A stretch of DNA of 64,000 bases, taken from contig CM106586.1 of NCBI GenBank assembly GCA_048013815.1, positions 248,001 through 312,000 of the forward strand, in the 5' to 3' direction. Of the stretch, positions 2,915 to 27,879 are shown piece after piece. The notes below the pieces were generated by a model. That model did no database searches, was not told where the DNA came from, and saw only the letters and a list, made by a program, of their open reading frames with translations. This DNA is from Setoptus koraiensis. Its lineage: Eukaryota > Animalia > Arthropoda. How positions within the stretch are numbered: the stretch's first letter is position 1; each line of letters starts with the position of its first letter. The translations under genes were made by a program, and so were the position numbers.

Positions 2915-3738
2915 GGTTGTTGTAGCGATTAGGTCTCCACCCAGATTCTGATGAAACTTCCGGTATAGGTTCATATTGACCCAAATAAGACGAGGAAATT
3001 ACTCCGGAAGCCAGGAAACTTCCGGTTCCGGTTTGACATGAAGTTGAAGCAAGAGATCTGAAACTCACCAGACCGACGTTTCAGAGAACGCTGAACAGAA
3101 TAGCATACTTTTCAGCTCTGTGAGACTTCCGGTTCTCAGGATATCGGCTTATTTATAGGTTTGGAAGACCGGAAGTTGACGAATCTCAGCTTCGCTTCAC
3201 TCGGGTATGAACCTGCGATAGGTCTGAGAACTCAGCCTGCGGCCTCGTAATTTGGAGGCCGTCACATCTCCGTCGTCGCTCCCGCGACGACTACGTGCGA
3301 CGGGAACCCTTCGGGTAGGGTTGATGAGCGCTTCGGATATCGGGCTGCGCCCTTTACCCTCCGCTCACATGACTGCAATCCAGACACAGATGTTTGGAAT
3401 GGCAGAAGAATACGATAATGCATGGTGCTGCGCATACGTGGCACAGAATGAGTCCGCTGAACGCAACCGCACAGACCCGGCCACACCCTCGGTTCAGCTT
3501 GAACCTCTTTATCCACCGGAACGGAAGTAATAGAAAATTAATTTTGATGCCATTATGCTCCGCTAGGTGTCTCCTATCTAATTCCTAAATTTGGGAGCTC
3601 TATCTCGATATTTTCGTATCTCCGGAACCGGAAGTTTCCTGGCATCCGAAATACTAAATTCATAGTATGGGGCCCCTACGGGGCTCTTGTGTGAAGTTTC
3701 ATCGAGATCCGAGTGGGGACCTAATCGCTACAACACCC
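2915..3738 (+). mobile_element. Merlin-type MITE, family 1, complete
   Basis: Ends GGTTGTTGTAGCGATTAGG...CCTAATCGCTACAACACCC; 8-bp target duplication GAATTTTG on both sides; no coding capacity. Confidence 0.88.
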
Positions 3739-13965: not shown

Positions 13966-14535
13966 TTAAGCCCATCATGTTTCGTGCACTTTTGGTTTTA
14001 ATATTATAGTTAGAATATCAGCTCTTTGTAATTGTGTTGGTGCGTATTCAATATTAAACTGTTTTTGAGAATGTTTCTGATGAATGTATTTATATTTTTT
14101 ATCGATATGTTTCGATCTTGCTCTATACCGATTCAATTAGACGTAGGGTAGCCTGGTTATCAATGAGTAGTCTTGCCCAAGTAGTCAAGTTTAATTCACT
14201 TAGAAGACTCTCTACCCATGCGTGTACTTTTGCTGCATGATTTGCTGCCACAAATTCCGCCTCTGTGAATGATTGAGCAATTATAGACTGTATCTCACTC
14301 TTGAATAGTATTGGACCACCACGTAGCTCAATTAGGATACCACTGGTTGACTTGCGTGTTATAATATCACTATCCCAATCTCGGTCACAATACGCATTAA
14401 ACTCGGGCTCATTATGTTTCTATTGTGTAAACAACAAACCGGCTGACATAGCACCCTTCAGATATCTTGCCACCGACAAGGCCGCAGTCCAATGTTTATG
14501 TTTTGAATCAGTGTTGAACCTCGATAGTAAACTTA

Positions 14536-16479
14536 CAGGGTGTTTGAACTGACCTGATATGTAAGCACTGTGGAAGGTACGTGCCTTCCACAGTGCATTT
14601 TTCAAAGCACTGCGGAAGGCATATAGCACAGCACATCGCACACGGGTATTTATTTTTCTTGCGCAACTATTTTCTCTCTCTCTGTGCACTGCGCCAAGCC
14701 ATTCTTGCGCAACAGCATGCCTTTCGCTTCTCTGGACTGTTGCACTTCCGTTTTAAGCCTCGGCCACACCCTAGTTTCTCCTTCATTCGTTCTTTGTCTT
14801 CGATTATTATACAGCTATTATTACTATTATAATTATCAATTAAAATAAAGAACATTATTGATCAAAATTAATTCATAAGAAAGAAAAAATCATGGCAGCA
14901 TTTATCAATCTATTTATCACCGTCGCTCTCATCATATTTGCGACTGCAGATGGTACAGAGCGCTGGACCAGACCGCAGAAGGCCGAAATGATGTGGGATT
15001 GAGCGAGAGTCAAAGAATACAAAACCTTGCAGACTCTGTACATACAAAAGAAGAATGCCGGTTTAATAGATTAAGGCCTACCGGACTATCAAACTCTGCA
15101 CCGAATTAAAAACAAATTTCTCACCTTCGGCACTTTCGACGATCGTCGCAAAGGAGTGAATTGCGAAATAGAAGCCTCAAAGATTGCTGCAATTAAAGAG
15201 CTGACCAAAGGTGGACTGTACCCATCAAGCATCCGCAAAATCGCCGCTCATCCGTCTGTCAACCTGACTATTTATATGACGCACAAGATGCTGCGAAGAT
15301 GTTTGAAGATGAAGCCATACCGTCCCAGAACACTGCAATACTTGAATGATAAGCAGCAAGAGCGGTTAGAATTTGCAAACAAAATTATTCAACTCGCTGG
15401 AGGGCGAGCCAGTCTCAATCATGATTATTTCAAGAATATAATATTTACCGATGAATCTTGGTTCAGCACGGACGGCTCTATCAACAAGCAGAACACTGTA
15501 TTCTGGTCTCCATCGAACCCAATGCAGGTCTATGAGCGCGAGATGCATGCAGATAAAGTCATGGTCATAGCTTCCATTGGCTTTGACTACAAGAAAGGAC
15601 CATTCTTTTTCAATGGTAGTGTGACTTCTCAAAGTTATCAGGATATGCTCGACGCGCACCTCTTCTCTGACCCATATATTATTAACGGCTTTGCTCAGAA
15701 GAGGCTTATCTTCATGCAGGATGGGGCTGGTCCGCATACATCTCTTTTGAACAGAGAGTACTTGAATGAGAAAACCGGCGGCCGTTGGCTCGGCAAGTAT
15801 CCGCCCTATCTGTGGTGGCCACCATATTCGCCAGACTTAACACCTATGGATTTCTACTTCTGGGGCGTTCTTAAATCAAAAGTTTACACGCATGATAGAC
15901 CATTTCGCGGTAAACTTGATCTGCTGAAGAGAGTAATCATTGAAGAATTCAACACCATGGACCAATTCGAAATCAATAAAGCTTGTGTCAGCGGGTTTGT
16001 CGACCGGATTGTCGAAGTTATACAAAACGAAGGTGGACACATCGCTCATGATGTGGAGAATCGAAGAACCGATCCAGAAGATTATCTCTACCTAGACCCA
16101 ATAGAGAGCCTCAGGATGGGACTGAACACGATCTCGCTGAGCGATGACCCGCCTGAGGAAATAGAATGTGACGATGACGATGATGATTTCGAAGTAATGC
16201 TGAAGAGGCAAGTAAACATTGAAGTCTTCCACAGAATCTCAGAGCTTTTAGAAAAATTCGACAAAGAAGAAGCGAAGCGATTCAACAAATATAGTAATTC
16301 TTCTGTCATTAATTAATATTAATTATTAATATTTTCAATGTAAAAGAGCCCCAATAAATGCACGAAGATGAGCACAGTGACAGTGCGCTCGTCGTGCAAG
16401 CGCGCAAGCGTGCGCGCCCGCATACCCCCTCTGTGCGAAAATTTCTGAGCCAACATATCACATCAGTTCAGACACCCTG
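14536..16479 (+). mobile_element. Tc1/mariner (rosa-like) DNA transposon, full length
   Basis: TA|CAGGGTGTTTGAACTGACCTGATATG ... CATATCACATCAGTTCAGACACCCTG|TA imperfect TIRs with TA duplication. Confidence 0.9.
14892..16316 (+). pseudogene. rosa-like DD42D transposase, 474 codons, two in-frame stops in the N-terminal part
   Basis: FTDES, FMQDGAGPH and WPPYSPDLTPMDFYFWG motifs; the frame extends from ATG 14892 through TGA 15000-15002 and TAA 15072-15074 into the tracked ORF 15156-16316. Confidence 0.9.
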
Positions 16480-18534
16480 TACATCAAACACGATGTCTGG
16501 GCGTGTGAGACATGCAAGATAGTTGATCGCTCCTGTGAGGCTACTGTATGGTTTAGATGTTGGTTTATCATCTGAGCATTCTGTGAGCAAATGATTCGCA
16601 TCGATCTATAGAGTTGTCGTTATTTTACCGTTTGCCATGTCAATCTTCGGTTGTTGTAACGATGAAGTCCCCACTCAGATCTTGATGAAACTTTCGGTAT
16701 GAGTCTATTATGACCCCAATAAGTCGAAAAAGTTAGTCTGGAAGTGCGAAAACTTCCGGTTCCGGTTTTACCTGAAGTTGAAGCCAGAGCTCTGAAATTC
16801 ACACGAGAGGCGATCCAGGCTATGCTGAACACGATGACACAATTTCCAGCTCTGTGCTACTTCCGGTTTTCTAGTTATAAGGATATTACTAGGGTTAAAA
16901 GACCAGAAGTGACAAAATTACTGCATCGCTGCACTCAGGTACGATCGCGAACATCGATTTAGAGACACGAGGGGGCAGCAGCGCATTTTTCCCTGCGCAG
17001 AACAGAGCGCGAATTTGAATTAGAAAAAGTGGTTATTCTATACAAGAGCGCCACACTTTTTTCGAGGTATTATGGGTATTTTCGGGTAGGATATTGTACC
17101 CTGATACCGCAATGGGTATTCTGGAAGTGCGGAAATTCCTCGTTCCCGAGATGACCGAGGTACCGCTCAGTGGGCGTTTCACAGTACCCGACAGCCGCTT
17201 GGGGATTTGCAGGTATTTTTTCGAGGTAATTTTTGGTACCTTGATGAGGTCGCATGAGGTTTTTTGGATAGACGAGTATCGTTGGAATATGGATGCGAGA
17301 GATGCATAGATGTTCAACTCCGACATGTTATCACATACTCAGAGACTCAAATCTCCATAGAGTGAACATGTGTAATGTTTAGATACTTTAACATGGTAAT
17401 CGAGAGACTCAAATCTCCATAGGGTTAACATGTGTAATGTTTAGATACTTTAACACGGGAATCGAGAGACTCAAATCTCCATAAGGTTAACATGTGTAAT
17501 GATTAGATACTTTAACGGATTTAGTACAATGAAACGCTTAAATGTTGACTTTTAGAATCTAGCACACGTAAAGCCAGGAGGCGGAGTCATTAGTAAACAA
17601 TTATACAGTGAAGGCTGAGAGACTAACTAGTAAAAATTAGCATGCGATAATGCTAGCTGTTCACAAATTGAATTTAGCACAAGGGAAGCTAGGAGTGCAA
17701 AAGCTAGACGGATTTAGTACGATGAAACGCTTAAATGTTGACTTTTAGAAACTAGCACACGTGAAGCTAGAAGGCAGAGTTATGAGAGGACAAATATACA
17801 GTAGAAGCTGAAACGCTAACTGGTAGAAATAAGCATGCGATAATGATATCTATTTACAAATTTGACTCATCAACACAAAGAAATAGCACACCGCACACAG
17901 GTCGTGCGCTTTATTACAGAGTGCGCCATTGCTGACTTTTTGTGTCTCGAAAAATCATTTATTGTGACTATTCACCAAATTTTGTACGCAAGCAGTCAAC
18001 ATGTGTATTTAGCCATATTGAAAATCTGAGACATTTTGATTTATTTTGTTACCCTCTACAGCTGCTTCGATCAGACCAAACGGCTCATTCTCATAGCACA
18101 CCGCACACAGGTCGCGCGCTATAACACATAGTGCACCATCGCTGACTTTTTGTGTCTCGTAAAATTATTTATTGTGACTAAATCGGGTATTATAAATTCA
18201 CCAAATTTAGTACGCAAGCAGTCAACATGTGTATCTTGCTATAGTGCAAATTTGAGACACGTAGATCTTCTCTCCCAAATCTCGCGGACTCGCTTCAAAT
18301 AGCTCATTCACACATTGAAGTAGCAAACAACATAGATTGTGCATCTTACAGCACATACTGTGCCATCGCCCCTCGGTGTATCTATCTAGATAGTTATCTC
18401 CGACATGTCATTACATACTCGCTTCTATATTCTTATCATACTTGTCCATCCAAAAAATTAAGCGCTCGAGATACTGACATAATCAGTATCACTTGTTTTC
18501 TGATGTTGTCGCATCGATGGTTGAAACGAGAATG

Positions 18535-22836: not shown

Positions 22837-23892
22837 GGGGCTTGTTCGGAAAGACGACACACCCCAATTTGGGTATTTTGGGTATTTTTGGGTAGGGTAT
22901 AGTACCCTGATACCCGAATGGGTATTCCGGAAGTGCGGAAATTCTTCGTTACCGAGATACCCGGGGTACCGCATTGTGGGTATTTCAGGGTATTTGAGGG
23001 CATATCGACGATACAATCGGTCGTACCCACCCGCACGGACATCGGGTAGGGTACTGAGGTCTCCACACCGAGGGTAGATCATTCCTATGAGCCACAGGAA
23101 ATGAATAAAAGCGGTCAAACTGAAGAGGCGTGGCTTGTGCGCGCGGCGCGGAGTGCAACTGCGCCCGCAGATAGTCAGACCACCCACCGAGTCCTAGCGC
23201 GTGCACAATTACTTTTTGCTACCAGTTGCGCGTACTTATTCACGTGTGGACCAGATTCACGTACAGCACACGATCAGCTGTAGTGTGTGCTTGTGCACTA
23301 TGGAAGGCATAGCACACGCTACAGCTGATCGCTCAATGTTGACTAGCGAGGCCAATCAATAGCTATCCTCCCACTCCTACTGTAGCTCAATCACTCAAGC
23401 GCGCACTAATAACTCACACACTAACTCTTTCTTACCCGACAATTAAAACTCCGCATACCCGATAGCGGGTCGACCCAATCTATAAAAAAAAAAATAAACC
23501 CAAAAAGTCATTATAATGACTGATCCACTATCAGGTATGTGGAGTCAAGCTCGACTGTATCGAGAGGCCAGTCTCTCGAACAAGAAAGCTTGCATTGAAT
23601 GGTGTCAGCGAGTAGGCTTGATTCCTTCAATTAAAATGTGCCGAATACACCGGACTCCGTTCCAGCTGGTTGAACAAACACACTTACGGGTATTCGGCCA
23701 TGGTTGGTACTGCAGTAAGTGTCGGAAGAGGGTGGCACTCGGAGTTGGTACTCCATTCGAAAGTTGCCATTCCGACATTGGGCAAGTACTGATGATCGGC
23801 ATGTGCTTCGCAGAGTTAAATACATTAGTGGGGCAGACTCCGCAGATGTTGACTGCCTGTCGAGAGCTGCCGCTAATGGCCTACAAAAAATA
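22837..23892 (+). mobile_element. 5' portion of a transposase-bearing Merlin element
   Basis: GGGGCTTGTTCGGAAAGACGACAC TIR plus a ~230-bp arm matching the end of the MITE at 51198-52053, followed by a Merlin-like ORF. Confidence 0.7.
23516..23892 (+). pseudogene. Merlin/IS1595-like transposase N-terminus (zinc-ribbon region), interrupted
   Basis: CIEWCQRVGLIP..C..H...WYCSKCRKRVALGVGTPFES pattern typical of Merlin/IS1595 N-termini; no DDE part visible; the rest of the tracked ORF is read-through into the inserted element. Confidence 0.7.
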
Positions 23893-24199
23893 TAGGGTGT
23901 CTCAATCAAGCGCCCAGGGTTGTACAGATTATGCTACGCTACCTTCCACAGTGCATTTCTCAGAATGCACTGTGGAAGCTACGCAAGCACAGAGTGTGCA
24001 CAAGCACACAGTGCGCATGCAGCAGCGGCAGTTTGTGTGTGCGGGGAGTGCGGGGAGTGCGGTGTGTGCGGTGTGTGCGGTGTGTGCGGGAGTGCGGGAG
24101 TACGGCGTGTGCGGGGAGTGCGGGGAGTGCGGCGTGCGGCGTGTACCGGAAGCTCCCCAACAACCCTTCCACACTTTTAAAATAATAAATTTATAAATT

Positions 24200-24217
24200 A
24201 ATAAATTAATAAATTTA

Positions 24218-24284
<67 letters not shown>

Positions 24285-24790
24285 CAACAATAACAACAGC
24301 AATAGTAACAACAGCGACAACGGCAACTGCAGCAGCAGCACCACCACCACCACCAACCGCAGCACCACCACCAACCGCAGCAACACCAGCACCAACTGCA
24401 GCAACACCAACTGCAGCAGCAGCACCACCACCAACTGCACCAACTGCAGCAACACCAACTGCACCAACTGCAGCAACACCACCACCAACTTCAGCAACAC
24501 CAACTGCACCAACACCACCAGCACCAACAACAATTGCAACAATTGCAACAACAAAAAATTGGAAAATGGTAAGTTCTAGTCTGCCTGTGCGTGTGCCTGT
24601 GCGTGTGCGTGTGCGTGTGCCTGTGCGTGTGCCTGTGCGTGTGCCTGTGCGTGTGGAGGGGAGTATCAGGAGGGGAGTATCAGGAGGGGAGTAACGGGAG
24701 GGTAGTATCAGGAGGGGAGTAACGGGAGGGTAGTATCAGGAGGGGAGTAACGGGGAGTGGTATCGGGAGGGGAGAATTCGGAGAGAGAAT
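24200..24790 (+). repeat. Simple-repeat block: (AAAAC)n, (CAN)n, (GTGCGT/GTGCCT)n, (GGGGAGTATCAGGA)n
   Basis: Directly visible. Confidence 0.92.
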
Positions 24791-24916
24791 CGCCTATTCG
24801 CTTGCATGTTCTATCGAGTCTTCGGGTATTCGCGTGCATGTTCTATCGGGTATTCGGGTGCGTATAAATTTCTTCGAGGATTTATTTTCTGTGATTGAAT
24901 GTTTCTTTGAGGACGC

Positions 24917-26777
24917 ATGGGCACACCTCCATCTGTATGTTCGCTCTGACTGATCACAGTCCTGAATTTTCAACTGGTTTTGCTCCCTACTTCTACAGGC
25001 CCCATCCAAACACACTCTATTTGCTCTTATTCTGCTGAGTGTCTCTGTCACATGCGTCGGAGCCGAGCTTCTCCCAAAAGATAAAGCGAGAATCCTCTAC
25101 AATTTCTTCAAACTTGGGGAGAATTTTTGCCAGCTACAGAAACTTTACCAAAACAAAACTTTCGAAGTTGGCCAATTTCCGACGGAACGGAGAACTGTCA
25201 TTGATTGGAAAAAAAATTTTCTCGAGTTTGGCAACGTCAATGCTCCAAGGGGCGGTGCTCGTGAGGAGTTAACAAAAATCACGCCGGAACTTATTGAAAA
25301 AGTTAGAGTGGCCTGCAAAAATGGTACAGTACCAACAAGTACGAGATTGATAGCAGCGGAAGTAGGCCTCAGTAGGTGTACCGTTCACAGAATACTTAGA
25401 TGCAAACTGAAGTTGAAAGGATACCATCCACGCCACCTGCCCCGCCTTTACGGAGCTCAAGAGAAACGTATAGCATTTGCGGAAGCCATCCTTGAACGAG
25501 CGCCCCTTGAAAACGATACTTTCTACGAAAGACTCGTCTTCTCCGACGAGGCTTGGTTCACGACTGGAGGTCACGTGAACAAGCACAACACAGTTTATTA
25601 CGCAGATAAAAACCCGCATCATATTGTGGAGACTGAGTTGCACGCTAAAAAGAAAATGGCCATTGTATTCATCGGTCATTCATTCAGAAGAGGCCCGTTC
25701 TTTTTCGACGAGAATATAAACGCAGATAATTACATAAAAATGCTCCATGAAAAATTCTTTGATAATTCAACGATTCGAACATTCAGAAACCGTCGAAAAA
25801 TTTTCATGCAAGACGGAGCTAAACCGCACTCAGCCTTCAAAACGGTTAACTATTTAAACATGCAAACTGACGGTCAATGGATCGGAATCGGATCCTCCTT
25901 CTTAGAGTGGCCCCCACATTCGCCAGACTTGAACCCCCTCGACTTTTTCCTCTGGGGTCATCTTAAACAGCAAGTTTACCAGCATGGCAGAAGTTTCAGA
26001 GACAACCTGCCGTCTCTCATTAACACAATTGAAAATGAGTTTTGGGATATACTAAGTTTCACGATCGACAAGGCTTGTACGACCGAATTCCATGGTAGAC
26101 TCAAGAAAGTCATCGAACTGAAAGGCGCCGTCGTTTCTCACGCAAGAGAGAATCGAATAACTTCCGAAGATACTTATGCCTTTCTCAATCCAGATTTAGC
26201 TGCACAGCTTGATCCGGAAAATTTGTACGGTATTGATTTCGACCGCCTCTACATTTCGAACCCCCCAGGCACTGTGGTGGAAGACTGGTGCCACTGTAAC
26301 GGAACTTGTCCTAGGTGCTTGGAGCCGCTAGATGATCTTCCGAGCGAACTACGTCCCCTCGATGAACCCTCGCCAGAGAAAAGGCCCCGTCTCGAACGAA
26401 GTGTCGAATTTAGTGATCTTAACGAAACCCAAACATATGGAGACGATGTTGACGAAGTCTGTACGCGCAACTCCACCCAACCCGAAGAAAAGAAGCAAAA
26501 GCGATGCAAAAAATGTCGAAAATGTCGAAGATGTAGGAAGTGTCCGACACAGCGTAAATGTATGAGTTCAAGAGGAGCCACTGCATCGAGGAGGTCACCA
26601 TTTTCTAGATCAAGCTTGATTGCTCGCCTCGCTCTATCTGCCGTTGCCCTTACTCAAAGCCAACACGATGCTTATGAAGAGAGCTATGAGCGAGAAGAGC
26701 TGTTCTCAGACGAACCAAGCACTCATGAAGAGGATGATTATGACTCAAACCACGACCCATGCTGGACGACCCATTAA
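24917..26777 (+). CDS. rosa-like DD42D transposase, predicted two exons (24917-24934, 24999-26777), about 598 aa
   Basis: FSDEA, FMQDGAKPH and WPPHSPDLNPLDFFLWG motifs; stop-free frame from 24966; phase-0 64-nt intron GTATGT...CTGAC...pyrimidine tract...CTACAG links it to ATG 24917. Confidence 0.8.
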
Positions 26778-27046
26778 ATTGCTCAAAAATTGAAAGAGAT
26801 GGCGATAGACTGCATGCCCATATGGACTTCCTGCGATCACTGTTCATGAATGCGTGTCACCCTGTGCTCTGGGTTTAAGATTTTTACTTTGAACAAACCC
26901 AGACCGGCCTAGATTCGCCCATACATGCAAATTTCCTGAATATCTCGAGAACCGGAAGTTGTAGAGATTTGAAAATGATGTCATCGAGGTTGTAGTAGTC
27001 TGATATACCAACATACCGAGTTTCAAGGCTGTATCTCAAAGATGAA

Positions 27047-27546
27047 NNNNNNNNNNNNNNNNNNNNNNNNNNNNNNNNNNNNNNNNNNNNNNNNNNNNNN
27101 NNNNNNNNNNNNNNNNNNNNNNNNNNNNNNNNNNNNNNNNNNNNNNNNNNNNNNNNNNNNNNNNNNNNNNNNNNNNNNNNNNNNNNNNNNNNNNNNNNNN
27201 NNNNNNNNNNNNNNNNNNNNNNNNNNNNNNNNNNNNNNNNNNNNNNNNNNNNNNNNNNNNNNNNNNNNNNNNNNNNNNNNNNNNNNNNNNNNNNNNNNNN
27301 NNNNNNNNNNNNNNNNNNNNNNNNNNNNNNNNNNNNNNNNNNNNNNNNNNNNNNNNNNNNNNNNNNNNNNNNNNNNNNNNNNNNNNNNNNNNNNNNNNNN
27401 NNNNNNNNNNNNNNNNNNNNNNNNNNNNNNNNNNNNNNNNNNNNNNNNNNNNNNNNNNNNNNNNNNNNNNNNNNNNNNNNNNNNNNNNNNNNNNNNNNNN
27501 NNNNNNNNNNNNNNNNNNNNNNNNNNNNNNNNNNNNNNNNNNNNNN
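27047..27546. other. Assembly gap (500 N)
   Basis: Run of N. Confidence 1.
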
Positions 27547-27573
27547 AAAAAATTAAGCGCTCGAAATACTGAT

Positions 27574-27879
27574 TTGATCAGTATTACTTGTATAATCTGC
27601 TCTCATTGTTCAAAGGTTTTATGTCTGGAACATTTCTTGGATCGGCATTGTTTTCACCAGATAGAACACGATTTTATACTTCACGTCGAGCATGAGAGGG
27701 CTCTACCTCAGGTTCATTATAATGTCACAGACGAGACCCATGGTCAACGAGCTAGCCAGCAACAACCAATCATCGATGTAGCCCCAGCAGCACCAAGTGC
27801 TGCAGGACATCCATATGCGTCGAGTAGCGACGATGATCATGACGAGTTGTTCGTAGAGAGAGAAGAGAAAGAGATCTAA
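27574..27879 (+). pseudogene. Possible Cys/His-rich C-terminal tail of a DNA-transposase-type gene
   Basis: CSHCSKVLCLEHFLDRHC motif followed by an acidic tail; upstream part lost at the gap or a repeat. Confidence 0.3.

Follow-up and report, generated by a model that had tools for sequence, protein, structure and literature searches.

Does a transposase gene place a leader of the endoplasmic reticulum (ER) type in front of its own DNA-binding domain, and if so, is this a peculiarity of one copy or the property of a lineage? The question is raised by transposase 2 (T2), a gene on the plus strand at positions 24917-26777 of a stretch of 64,000 nucleotides (nt) from Setoptus koraiensis (GenBank assembly GCA_048013815.1, contig CM106586.1, positions 248,001 to 312,000 of the forward strand), which we call the window. 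Transposases must reach nuclear DNA, and for this reason an obligatory ER-type leader across a clade of them is unexpected. We consider it probable (about 0.7) that T2 is the transposase of a transposon of such a clade, that its start codon would be supplied by a spliced mini exon, and that its ER-signal-like leader would engage the signal-recognition route.

A hydrophobic leader in a transposase clade

The main exon of T2 begins at 24999, and its translation (the exon-2 product) was used as the protein query.

24999..26777, plus strand: T2 main exon, 592 codons and stop; its translation comprises the leader, a bipartite helix-turn-helix (HTH), a catalytic core with three aspartates (DDD) and a long tail
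25014..25064, plus strand: hydrophobic core of the T2 leader and its small-residue end, TLFALILLSVSVTCVGA, with V at -3 and A at -1 before Glu

The frame is uninterrupted from 24999 until TAA at 26775-26777. It cannot be extended upstream because of the in-frame TGA codons at 24951-24953 and 24963-24965, the nearest stops on that side, and its earliest in-frame Met is residue 220, beyond the catalytic residue D183. Since the first Met follows the first catalytic Asp, the DNA-binding domain would need a spliced-in or unusual start. An earlier reading, made from the letters alone (the sequence-only reading), had likewise placed no other in-frame ATG, besides that of its first exon, ahead of the catalytic domain, and its description of the locus (ATG, GTATGT, CTGAC, acceptor and a frame open to 26777) matches the sequence exactly.

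The T2 leader reaches a maximum 11-residue Kyte-Doolittle hydropathy (KD11) of 2.83. Its fraction of T is 0.44 at codon position 2 vs. 0.22 at position 1 and 0.32 at position 3, and the two other reading frames of the region are not hydrophobic. Because the T excess is confined to codon position 2 and the other frames lack the property, hydrophobicity here is a coding property and not one of base composition; an artefact in which T-rich DNA encodes hydrophobic peptides by chance was thereby ruled out. In the AlphaFold 2 (AF2) model of the exon-2 product, the leader is a detached helix (residues 4-18, pLDDT 59-72) followed by coil and is not packed on the core. One variant in other samples changes Val to Phe within the hydrophobic core.

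A search of the window's own genome returned about a dozen related loci with 30-70% protein identity. All clade members with an intact N-terminus carry a hydrophobic core of 10-17 residues, which lies a few residues from the start and 6-12 residues ahead of the first helix of the DNA-binding domain. The leader is present in at least 12 members (T2, T1, L040, L042, L003, L004, L009, L012, L013, L031/P0001, L032 and P0121). It stands behind a direct ATG in transposase 1 of the window (T1), in the T1 copies L040 and L042, and in L003, L004, L009 and L012; among the relatives in the window's genome it stands behind a splice acceptor in L013; and three other sequencing runs supplied contigs that have it as well (P0001/L031, L032 and the intact, T1-like P0121). 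The maximum KD11 was 2.7-3.7 in 9/9 scored leaders, with uncharged runs of 10-17 residues, compared with a median of 0.78 in ordinary relatives (n = 116), two of which reached the hydrophobicity threshold (maximum KD11 >= 2.3).

Ordinary relatives start about 25 residues later, in an alignment column where the clade has no Met, and because no clade member has a Met at this ordinary start position, the leader is obligatory. In a maximum likelihood tree of the leader-bearing proteins and 60 ordinary relatives, the leader-bearing proteins formed a single branch (support 100/100). The predicted leader is shown to be ancestral to the clade: what had been noticed in two divergent elements at the same position is a lineage trait, with at least 12 members on one branch.

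The leaders are 20-28 residues long, with a brief polar start, a hydrophobic stretch of 10-17 residues and then small residues. Judged by eye, the small residues at -3/-1 are good in T2 (V..A), T1 and P0121 (A..G) and poor in L004 and L012, and in L004, L009, L012 and L013 the flank behind the hydrophobic core exceeds the one ahead of it in positive charge.

A hydrophobic extension was also seen at a locus of another type. L021/L079 (G000:C2:1332674-1333627, minus strand) is a canonical mariner (Transposase_1) open reading frame (ORF) with an in-frame upstream ATG that adds about 40 residues, including a 17-residue hydrophobic run, before the ordinary Met; L016 and L024 have weaker forms of this extension. 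In this genome the leader trait may extend to elements outside the clade; alternatively, the L021/L079 case may be a product of chance.

Candidate first exons for one acceptor

The ORF next to the acceptor has no usable ATG, from which we infer that its start codon is supplied by a mini first exon. Two such exons can be placed:

24917..24934, plus strand: first exon of model A, ATG at 24917-24919 and five codons, six codons in total
24935..24998, plus strand: candidate intron of 64 nt, with GTATGT at 24935, CTGAC at 24947-24951, a pyrimidine tract and CAG at 24996-24998
24566..24568, plus strand: one-codon first exon of model B, ATG followed by GTAAGT, with a 430-nt intron to 24998/24999
24863..24868, plus strand: TATAAA box of presumed function, 54 nt upstream of ATG 24917

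The 64-nt intron, which the sequence-only reading had proposed, has GT..AG ends, a donor consensus, a branch-like site, a pyrimidine tract and an in-frame join. The combination of in-frame ATG, GTRWGT donor and pyrimidine-rich YAG acceptor was generated in 2/3000 dinucleotide shuffles of the upstream 239 nt, under splice criteria that were fixed after the site had been seen. The acceptor YAG at 24998/24999 falls in the same alignment column in T2, L013, L031 and L032, each time behind a pyrimidine tract. No counterpart of the donor at 24935 was present among the relatives compared, the acceptor alone being conserved. The in-frame signals of the proposed intron are thus real and rare in shuffles, but the ATG/GTAAGT at 24566 offers an equally good donor for the same acceptor.

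We regard this second donor as a serious contender, although we lean away from it. According to model B, the true first exon would be ATG 24566-24568, the 64-nt "intron" and its ATG would lie inside a 430-nt intron inflated by microsatellites, and the leader would be the same. The nonamer ATGGTAAGT (24566-24574) occurs nowhere else in the 64 kb on either strand and is in phase 0 with the acceptor at 24998/24999. Furthermore, an identical one-codon layout is found in a conserved relative, L013/L033, and once the microsatellites are subtracted, the distance from ATG 24566 to the terminal inverted repeat (TIR) is approximately that of the T1 and L004 ATGs. The TATAAA box, however, is downstream of the 24566 donor and favours model A, and the 64-nt arrangement is the one that was rare in the shuffles. 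Models A and B differ in the first one to six residues only, and the leader is retained in both.

The layout of L013 can be compared with that of L033 (L033:3160-3726), its counterpart from another species. ATG/GTAAGT and acceptor are both kept, the intervening stretch of roughly 200 nt has about 60% identity and five indels, and exon 2 is 86% identical and free of indels. This exon-intron conservation shows that a mini first exon, followed by an intron directly ahead of the hydrophobic core, is in use within the clade. No good-quality ATG/GT could be singled out for the first exon of L031 or L032, and L031 may start at an ATG within its leader. The T2 contigs from the three other runs are DNA-like, with the 64-nt intron kept and no splice joints seen.

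The sequence-only reading had also suggested that a weak in-frame acceptor might yield a leader-less isoform. An AG is present at 25066-25067, and an exon from 25068 fits the frame, but the site has no pyrimidine tract; we rejected this isoform, even though the sequence permits it. As a separate observation, exon 1 of model A reads Met-Gly-x-x-x-Ser (24917-24934) and matches the loose, low-specificity N-myristoylation pattern.

Transposon identity, drift and a constrained derivative

The exon-2 product has the domains of a transposase, followed by an additional tail:

25074..25406, plus strand: paired-like bipartite HTH DNA-binding domain (Pfam, alignment, AF2)
25545..25943, plus strand: catalytic triad, D183 at 25545-25547, D272 at 25812-25814 and D315 at 25941-25943, with spacings of 88 and 42 (alignment columns)
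26154..26774, plus strand: clade-specific C-terminal extension of about 205 residues, mostly disordered (alignment, AF2)

Pfam returned DDE_3 at 34.4 bits (cut-off 28.6) and a weak HTH_32 match below its cut-off. The body of the protein contains seven N-glycosylation sequons. AF2 gave a confident core (residues 25-385, core pLDDT > 90), in which the HTH helices (residues 26-136, pLDDT mostly > 85) align with full-length Mos1 chains, and in Foldseek the core matched the Mos1 mariner, SETMAR and Sleeping Beauty transposases. Among ordinary relatives, the nearest are DUF4817 + DDE_3 transposases with DD41D spacing and a length of 345-365 amino acids (aa); with leader and tail, the clade proteins range from 486 to > 800 aa. 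The second and third Asp are 42 residues apart in T2, L003, P0001, L032 and P0121 and 41 in L004 and P0122, and the spacing is 41 in 47/67 aligned sequences with a complete DDD triad.

The extension consists, in order, of a conserved RENR...YLFLN motif, an acidic stretch and a basic CxxC-rich cluster. The extension headed by RENR...YLFLN is common to the clade, and the basic CxxC-rich cluster is found in T2, L004 and P0122. This CxxC-repeat cluster (window 26500-26560 and the tails of L004 and P0122) thus recurs in distant clade members; it could serve in metal binding, as a nuclear localisation signal (NLS), or both. An intact member, L003 (L003:688-3147, minus strand), has a tail that ends in a long Gly/Ala/Val-rich, glycine-zipper-like repeat before an N run, and this tail could, with the leader, form a second membrane segment.

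In a profile search of 1.84 billion representatives, the bit score fell from 423 to 254 outside the clade, and the clade is nearly missing from public protein sets, its members there being a handful of unnamed Logan singletons. A protein search with L013 for named homologues gave P0134 alone.

The ends of T2, and of T1 for comparison, are as follows:

23891..23914, plus strand: T2 5' end, TA target and TIR beginning TAGGGTGTCTCAA (motif scan); genome-wide repeat matches begin at 23888-23891
23921..24000, plus strand: subterminal hairpin (inverted-repeat search), common to T1 and a multi-copy family resembling miniature inverted-repeat transposable elements (MITEs)
24010..24760, plus strand: 5' untranslated region, enlarged by several microsatellites (read directly)
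26841..27046, plus strand: start of an unrelated multi-copy repeat, which interrupts T2 63 nt past its stop (boundary compared with L072)
14534..16481, plus strand: T1 element, with TIRs at both ends, TA followed by CAGGGTGT at 14534 and inverted at 16472-16481

The T2 5' TIR, about 1 kb upstream of the gene, resembles the T1 TIR, the L004 TIR (38-nt arms) and the published rosa TIR. The whole 5' end (23888-24010, TIR and hairpin) is shared with the MITE-like family and has at least 35 genomic matches; the family is probably represented by a MITE at window 3235-3395. Neither the motif scan nor the inverted-repeat search found a 3' TIR: the 206 nt after 26841 belong to the other repeat (at least 19 copies, 85-100% identity) and are followed by 500 N (27047-27546). 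The sequence-only reading had called the gene otherwise intact, which is true of the ORF and the DDD triad but not of the element, cut 63 nt past the stop and with no 3' TIR detected. In T1, L004 and two further copies, the ORF lies between paired TIRs that are flanked by TA and spaced 1.9-2.9 kb; the T1 leader begins at a direct ATG (14892), and the T1 ORF is interrupted by two stops.

T2 has the DDD triad in an RNase H-like fold and the bipartite HTH of Tc1/mariner transposases, with TA and TIR at the 5' end only. Of the rosa/DD41D features it shows the TIR type and departs from the 41-residue spacing and from the length of about 350-360 aa without additions. By its sequence, T2, present as a single copy, belongs to a small and so far undescribed clade of rosa/DD41D-like Tc1/mariner transposons in mites.

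T2 is single copy at the DNA level in this genome. Among its 33 classified variants in the contigs from other samples, 9 are synonymous and 24 non-synonymous, a spectrum of neutral drift, and T2 is therefore not a constrained host gene; it drifts as a transposon copy does. A host gene domesticated to encode a secreted protein might also be single copy with a long intact ORF, and the family member L013 does look domesticated. The neutral variant ratio, the 5' TIR with its subterminal hairpin, the full TIR pairs of close relatives and the position of T2 among other transposons nevertheless make this origin very improbable for T2.

A different doubt is whether T2 is a dead copy that has lost its start codon, with GT..AG present by chance and the hydrophobic stretch never translated. 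The single copy number, the missing 3' TIR, the interruption by another repeat, the 9:24 variant pattern and a run search in which no RNA run with the T2 stretch was found would all agree with it. We consider it unlikely, though less so than domestication, given that the 592-codon frame is still open with an intact triad, that the splice signals are rare by chance (2/3000), that the acceptor position is common to relatives, and that the leader is in frame with the clade's leader properties.

Three further observations concern the T2 locus and its surroundings. At window 25152-25289 and 26423-26636, other samples have two sequence variants that differ by up to 8%, which suggests that T2-like copies or alleles are polymorphic in populations. 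At window 26743-26815, the contigs of all three other runs have single G insertions at seven places and GG at an eighth; four of these places precede the T2 stop codon, so that either the last dozen codons differ among samples or the window has homopolymer errors. Just past the 500-N run, window 27547-27879 holds an open frame with a Cys/His-rich start, whose first residues are homologous to the segment that replaces the leader in L006 (G000:C1:22.83 Mb), the closest paralogue of T2; this suggests that L006 is a rearranged copy of T2 and its neighbour as a unit.

Constraint of another kind was observed in L013 (G000:C1:16338138-16338704), in which the catalytic core is deleted and what remains is the leader, the DNA-binding domain and a small part of the tail. 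L013 is single copy in the genome and has no TIR motif. Between L013 and L033, exon 2 has a synonymous divergence (dS) of 0.71 and a non-synonymous divergence (dN) of 0.025 (omega = 0.035, 188 codons), with the same stop codon, and three of the eight amino-acid changes fall within the leader, all of them conservative. For comparison, when the host gene next to L033 in the other species, which encodes an IRS-type PTB domain, is set against its counterpart in this genome, dS is 0.96 and omega 0.19. Colinearity of L013 and L033 extends over about 1.4 kb only; conserved wider synteny was ruled out because the counterpart of the IRS-PTB gene lies on the other contig here. Being free of TIRs, single copy and of low omega, L013/L033 looks like a domesticated gene. 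Its constraint is, at the level of sequence comparison, the best evidence that the predicted leader-bearing N-terminus is translated and matters.

Localisation and comparison with known systems

In the explanation that we prefer, the start codon would come from the mini exon (ATG 24917-24934 with the 64-nt intron, or ATG 24566 with the 430-nt intron), and the leader would be recognised co-translationally through the signal-recognition route, which would place synthesis of the protein, in whole or in part, at the ER membrane. The leader would act there as a cleaved signal or as an N-terminal anchor. Synthesis at the ER would alter the amount of transposase that reaches the nucleus, or its location within the nucleus, and the possible outcomes would be export, retention in the lumen, tethering to the nuclear envelope, or partial targeting with a nuclear fraction left.

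Several points weigh against this explanation. Two predicted donors, at 24935 and beside ATG 24566, compete for the acceptor, the ATG/GTAAGT being equally good, and the shuffle criteria were set with the site in view. No RNA run containing the T2 stretch was found in the run search, and T2, with no detectable 3' TIR, may never be expressed. L004 and L012 fit the -3/-1 pattern poorly, and the n-region is weakly charged in several members. The tail has NLS-like basic clusters, fitting a nuclear protein; these clusters, the weak n-region charge and the more positive C-flanks in several members all argue against simple secretion of the predicted proteins.

The same features bear on the proposal that the hydrophobic N-terminus, though translated, does not serve export but acts instead as an uncleaved anchor on the cytosolic or nucleoplasmic face of the ER or nuclear envelope, or as a multimerisation helix. 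The flanks of L004, L009, L012 and L013 (by eye) favour a topology with N out and C in, the tails have basic NLS-like clusters, and the N-terminal helix of Mos1 takes part in the dimer, which we count in favour of the proposal. Cores of 10-17 residues, however, would make a short membrane span, small residues are well placed at -3/-1 in T2, T1 and P0121, and the AF2 helix is detached, of low confidence and not packed on the core. We therefore find it doubtful, and prefer the ER-signal-like leader that engages the signal-recognition route.

An extension of the preferred reading is tentative and, in our judgement, less likely than not. The entire transposase lineage might be ER-made (secreted, lumenal, or tethered to the ER or nuclear envelope, with a controlled fraction or location at chromatin), and the L013-type derivative might be kept by the host under strong constraint. 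In the gall mite, this derivative might be a DNA-binding protein that is secreted.

Among the clade members are some whose TIRs and catalytic triads are intact. Should the leader do what its build suggests, a transposon would have a novel means of limiting, directing or exporting its own enzyme, a built-in control of localisation. To our knowledge, such localisation control is not known for any DNA transposon, and no account of a DNA transposase with a signal peptide turned up in searches of the literature. On the same condition, a constrained derivative of leader and HTH would be a new kind of domesticated transposase fragment. New here are the conserved acceptor with its competing donor, the canonical start column without Met across the clade, the frame-specific composition test, the neutral variant spectrum of T2 and the constrained L013 derivative.

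The nearest known system is the rosa/DD41D family, which includes Crmar2 and the aphid element Apismar4; the TIR of Apismar4.1 has been published (PMC5490172). The family and the mite clade share a TA target and short TIRs starting (A/T)AGGGTGTCTCAA, the T2 5' end being of the AGGGTGTCTCAA type (PMC5490172), as well as 41-42 residues between the second and third Asp and the DUF4817/HTH and DDE_3 domains. Ordinary members, in contrast, are proteins of 345-365 aa whose start lies about 5 residues ahead of the first helix. The mite clade lacks a Met at that ordinary start; its proteins are extended by a hydrophobic leader about 25 residues long and, at the C-terminus, by a tail of 100-400 residues. 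It stands on a branch of its own (100/100), and T2 has a spacing of 42. Mos1 and SETMAR (PDB 3HOS, 4U7B and 3F2K) are alike in their DNA-binding and catalytic folds (Foldseek E = 1e-13 to 1e-10), but identity is about 18-20%, and Mos1 is a DD34D transposase without leader or long tail.

The leaders resemble cleavable ER signal peptides of eukaryotes in lying at the extreme N-terminus, in being tripartite with a core of 10-17 residues, in having small -3/-1 residues in several members, and in conserving a property while the sequence is free to change. They differ in the weak n-region charge of several members and in their cargo, a DNA enzyme with NLS-like clusters, which is abnormal for such a signal. 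Finally, L013/L033 and L009 are comparable to KP-type repressors of the P element and other internally deleted derivatives in that they keep the DNA-binding part without the catalytic core; L013, however, has no TIRs, is single copy, has an omega of 0.035 between species and keeps the leader, which KP lacks.

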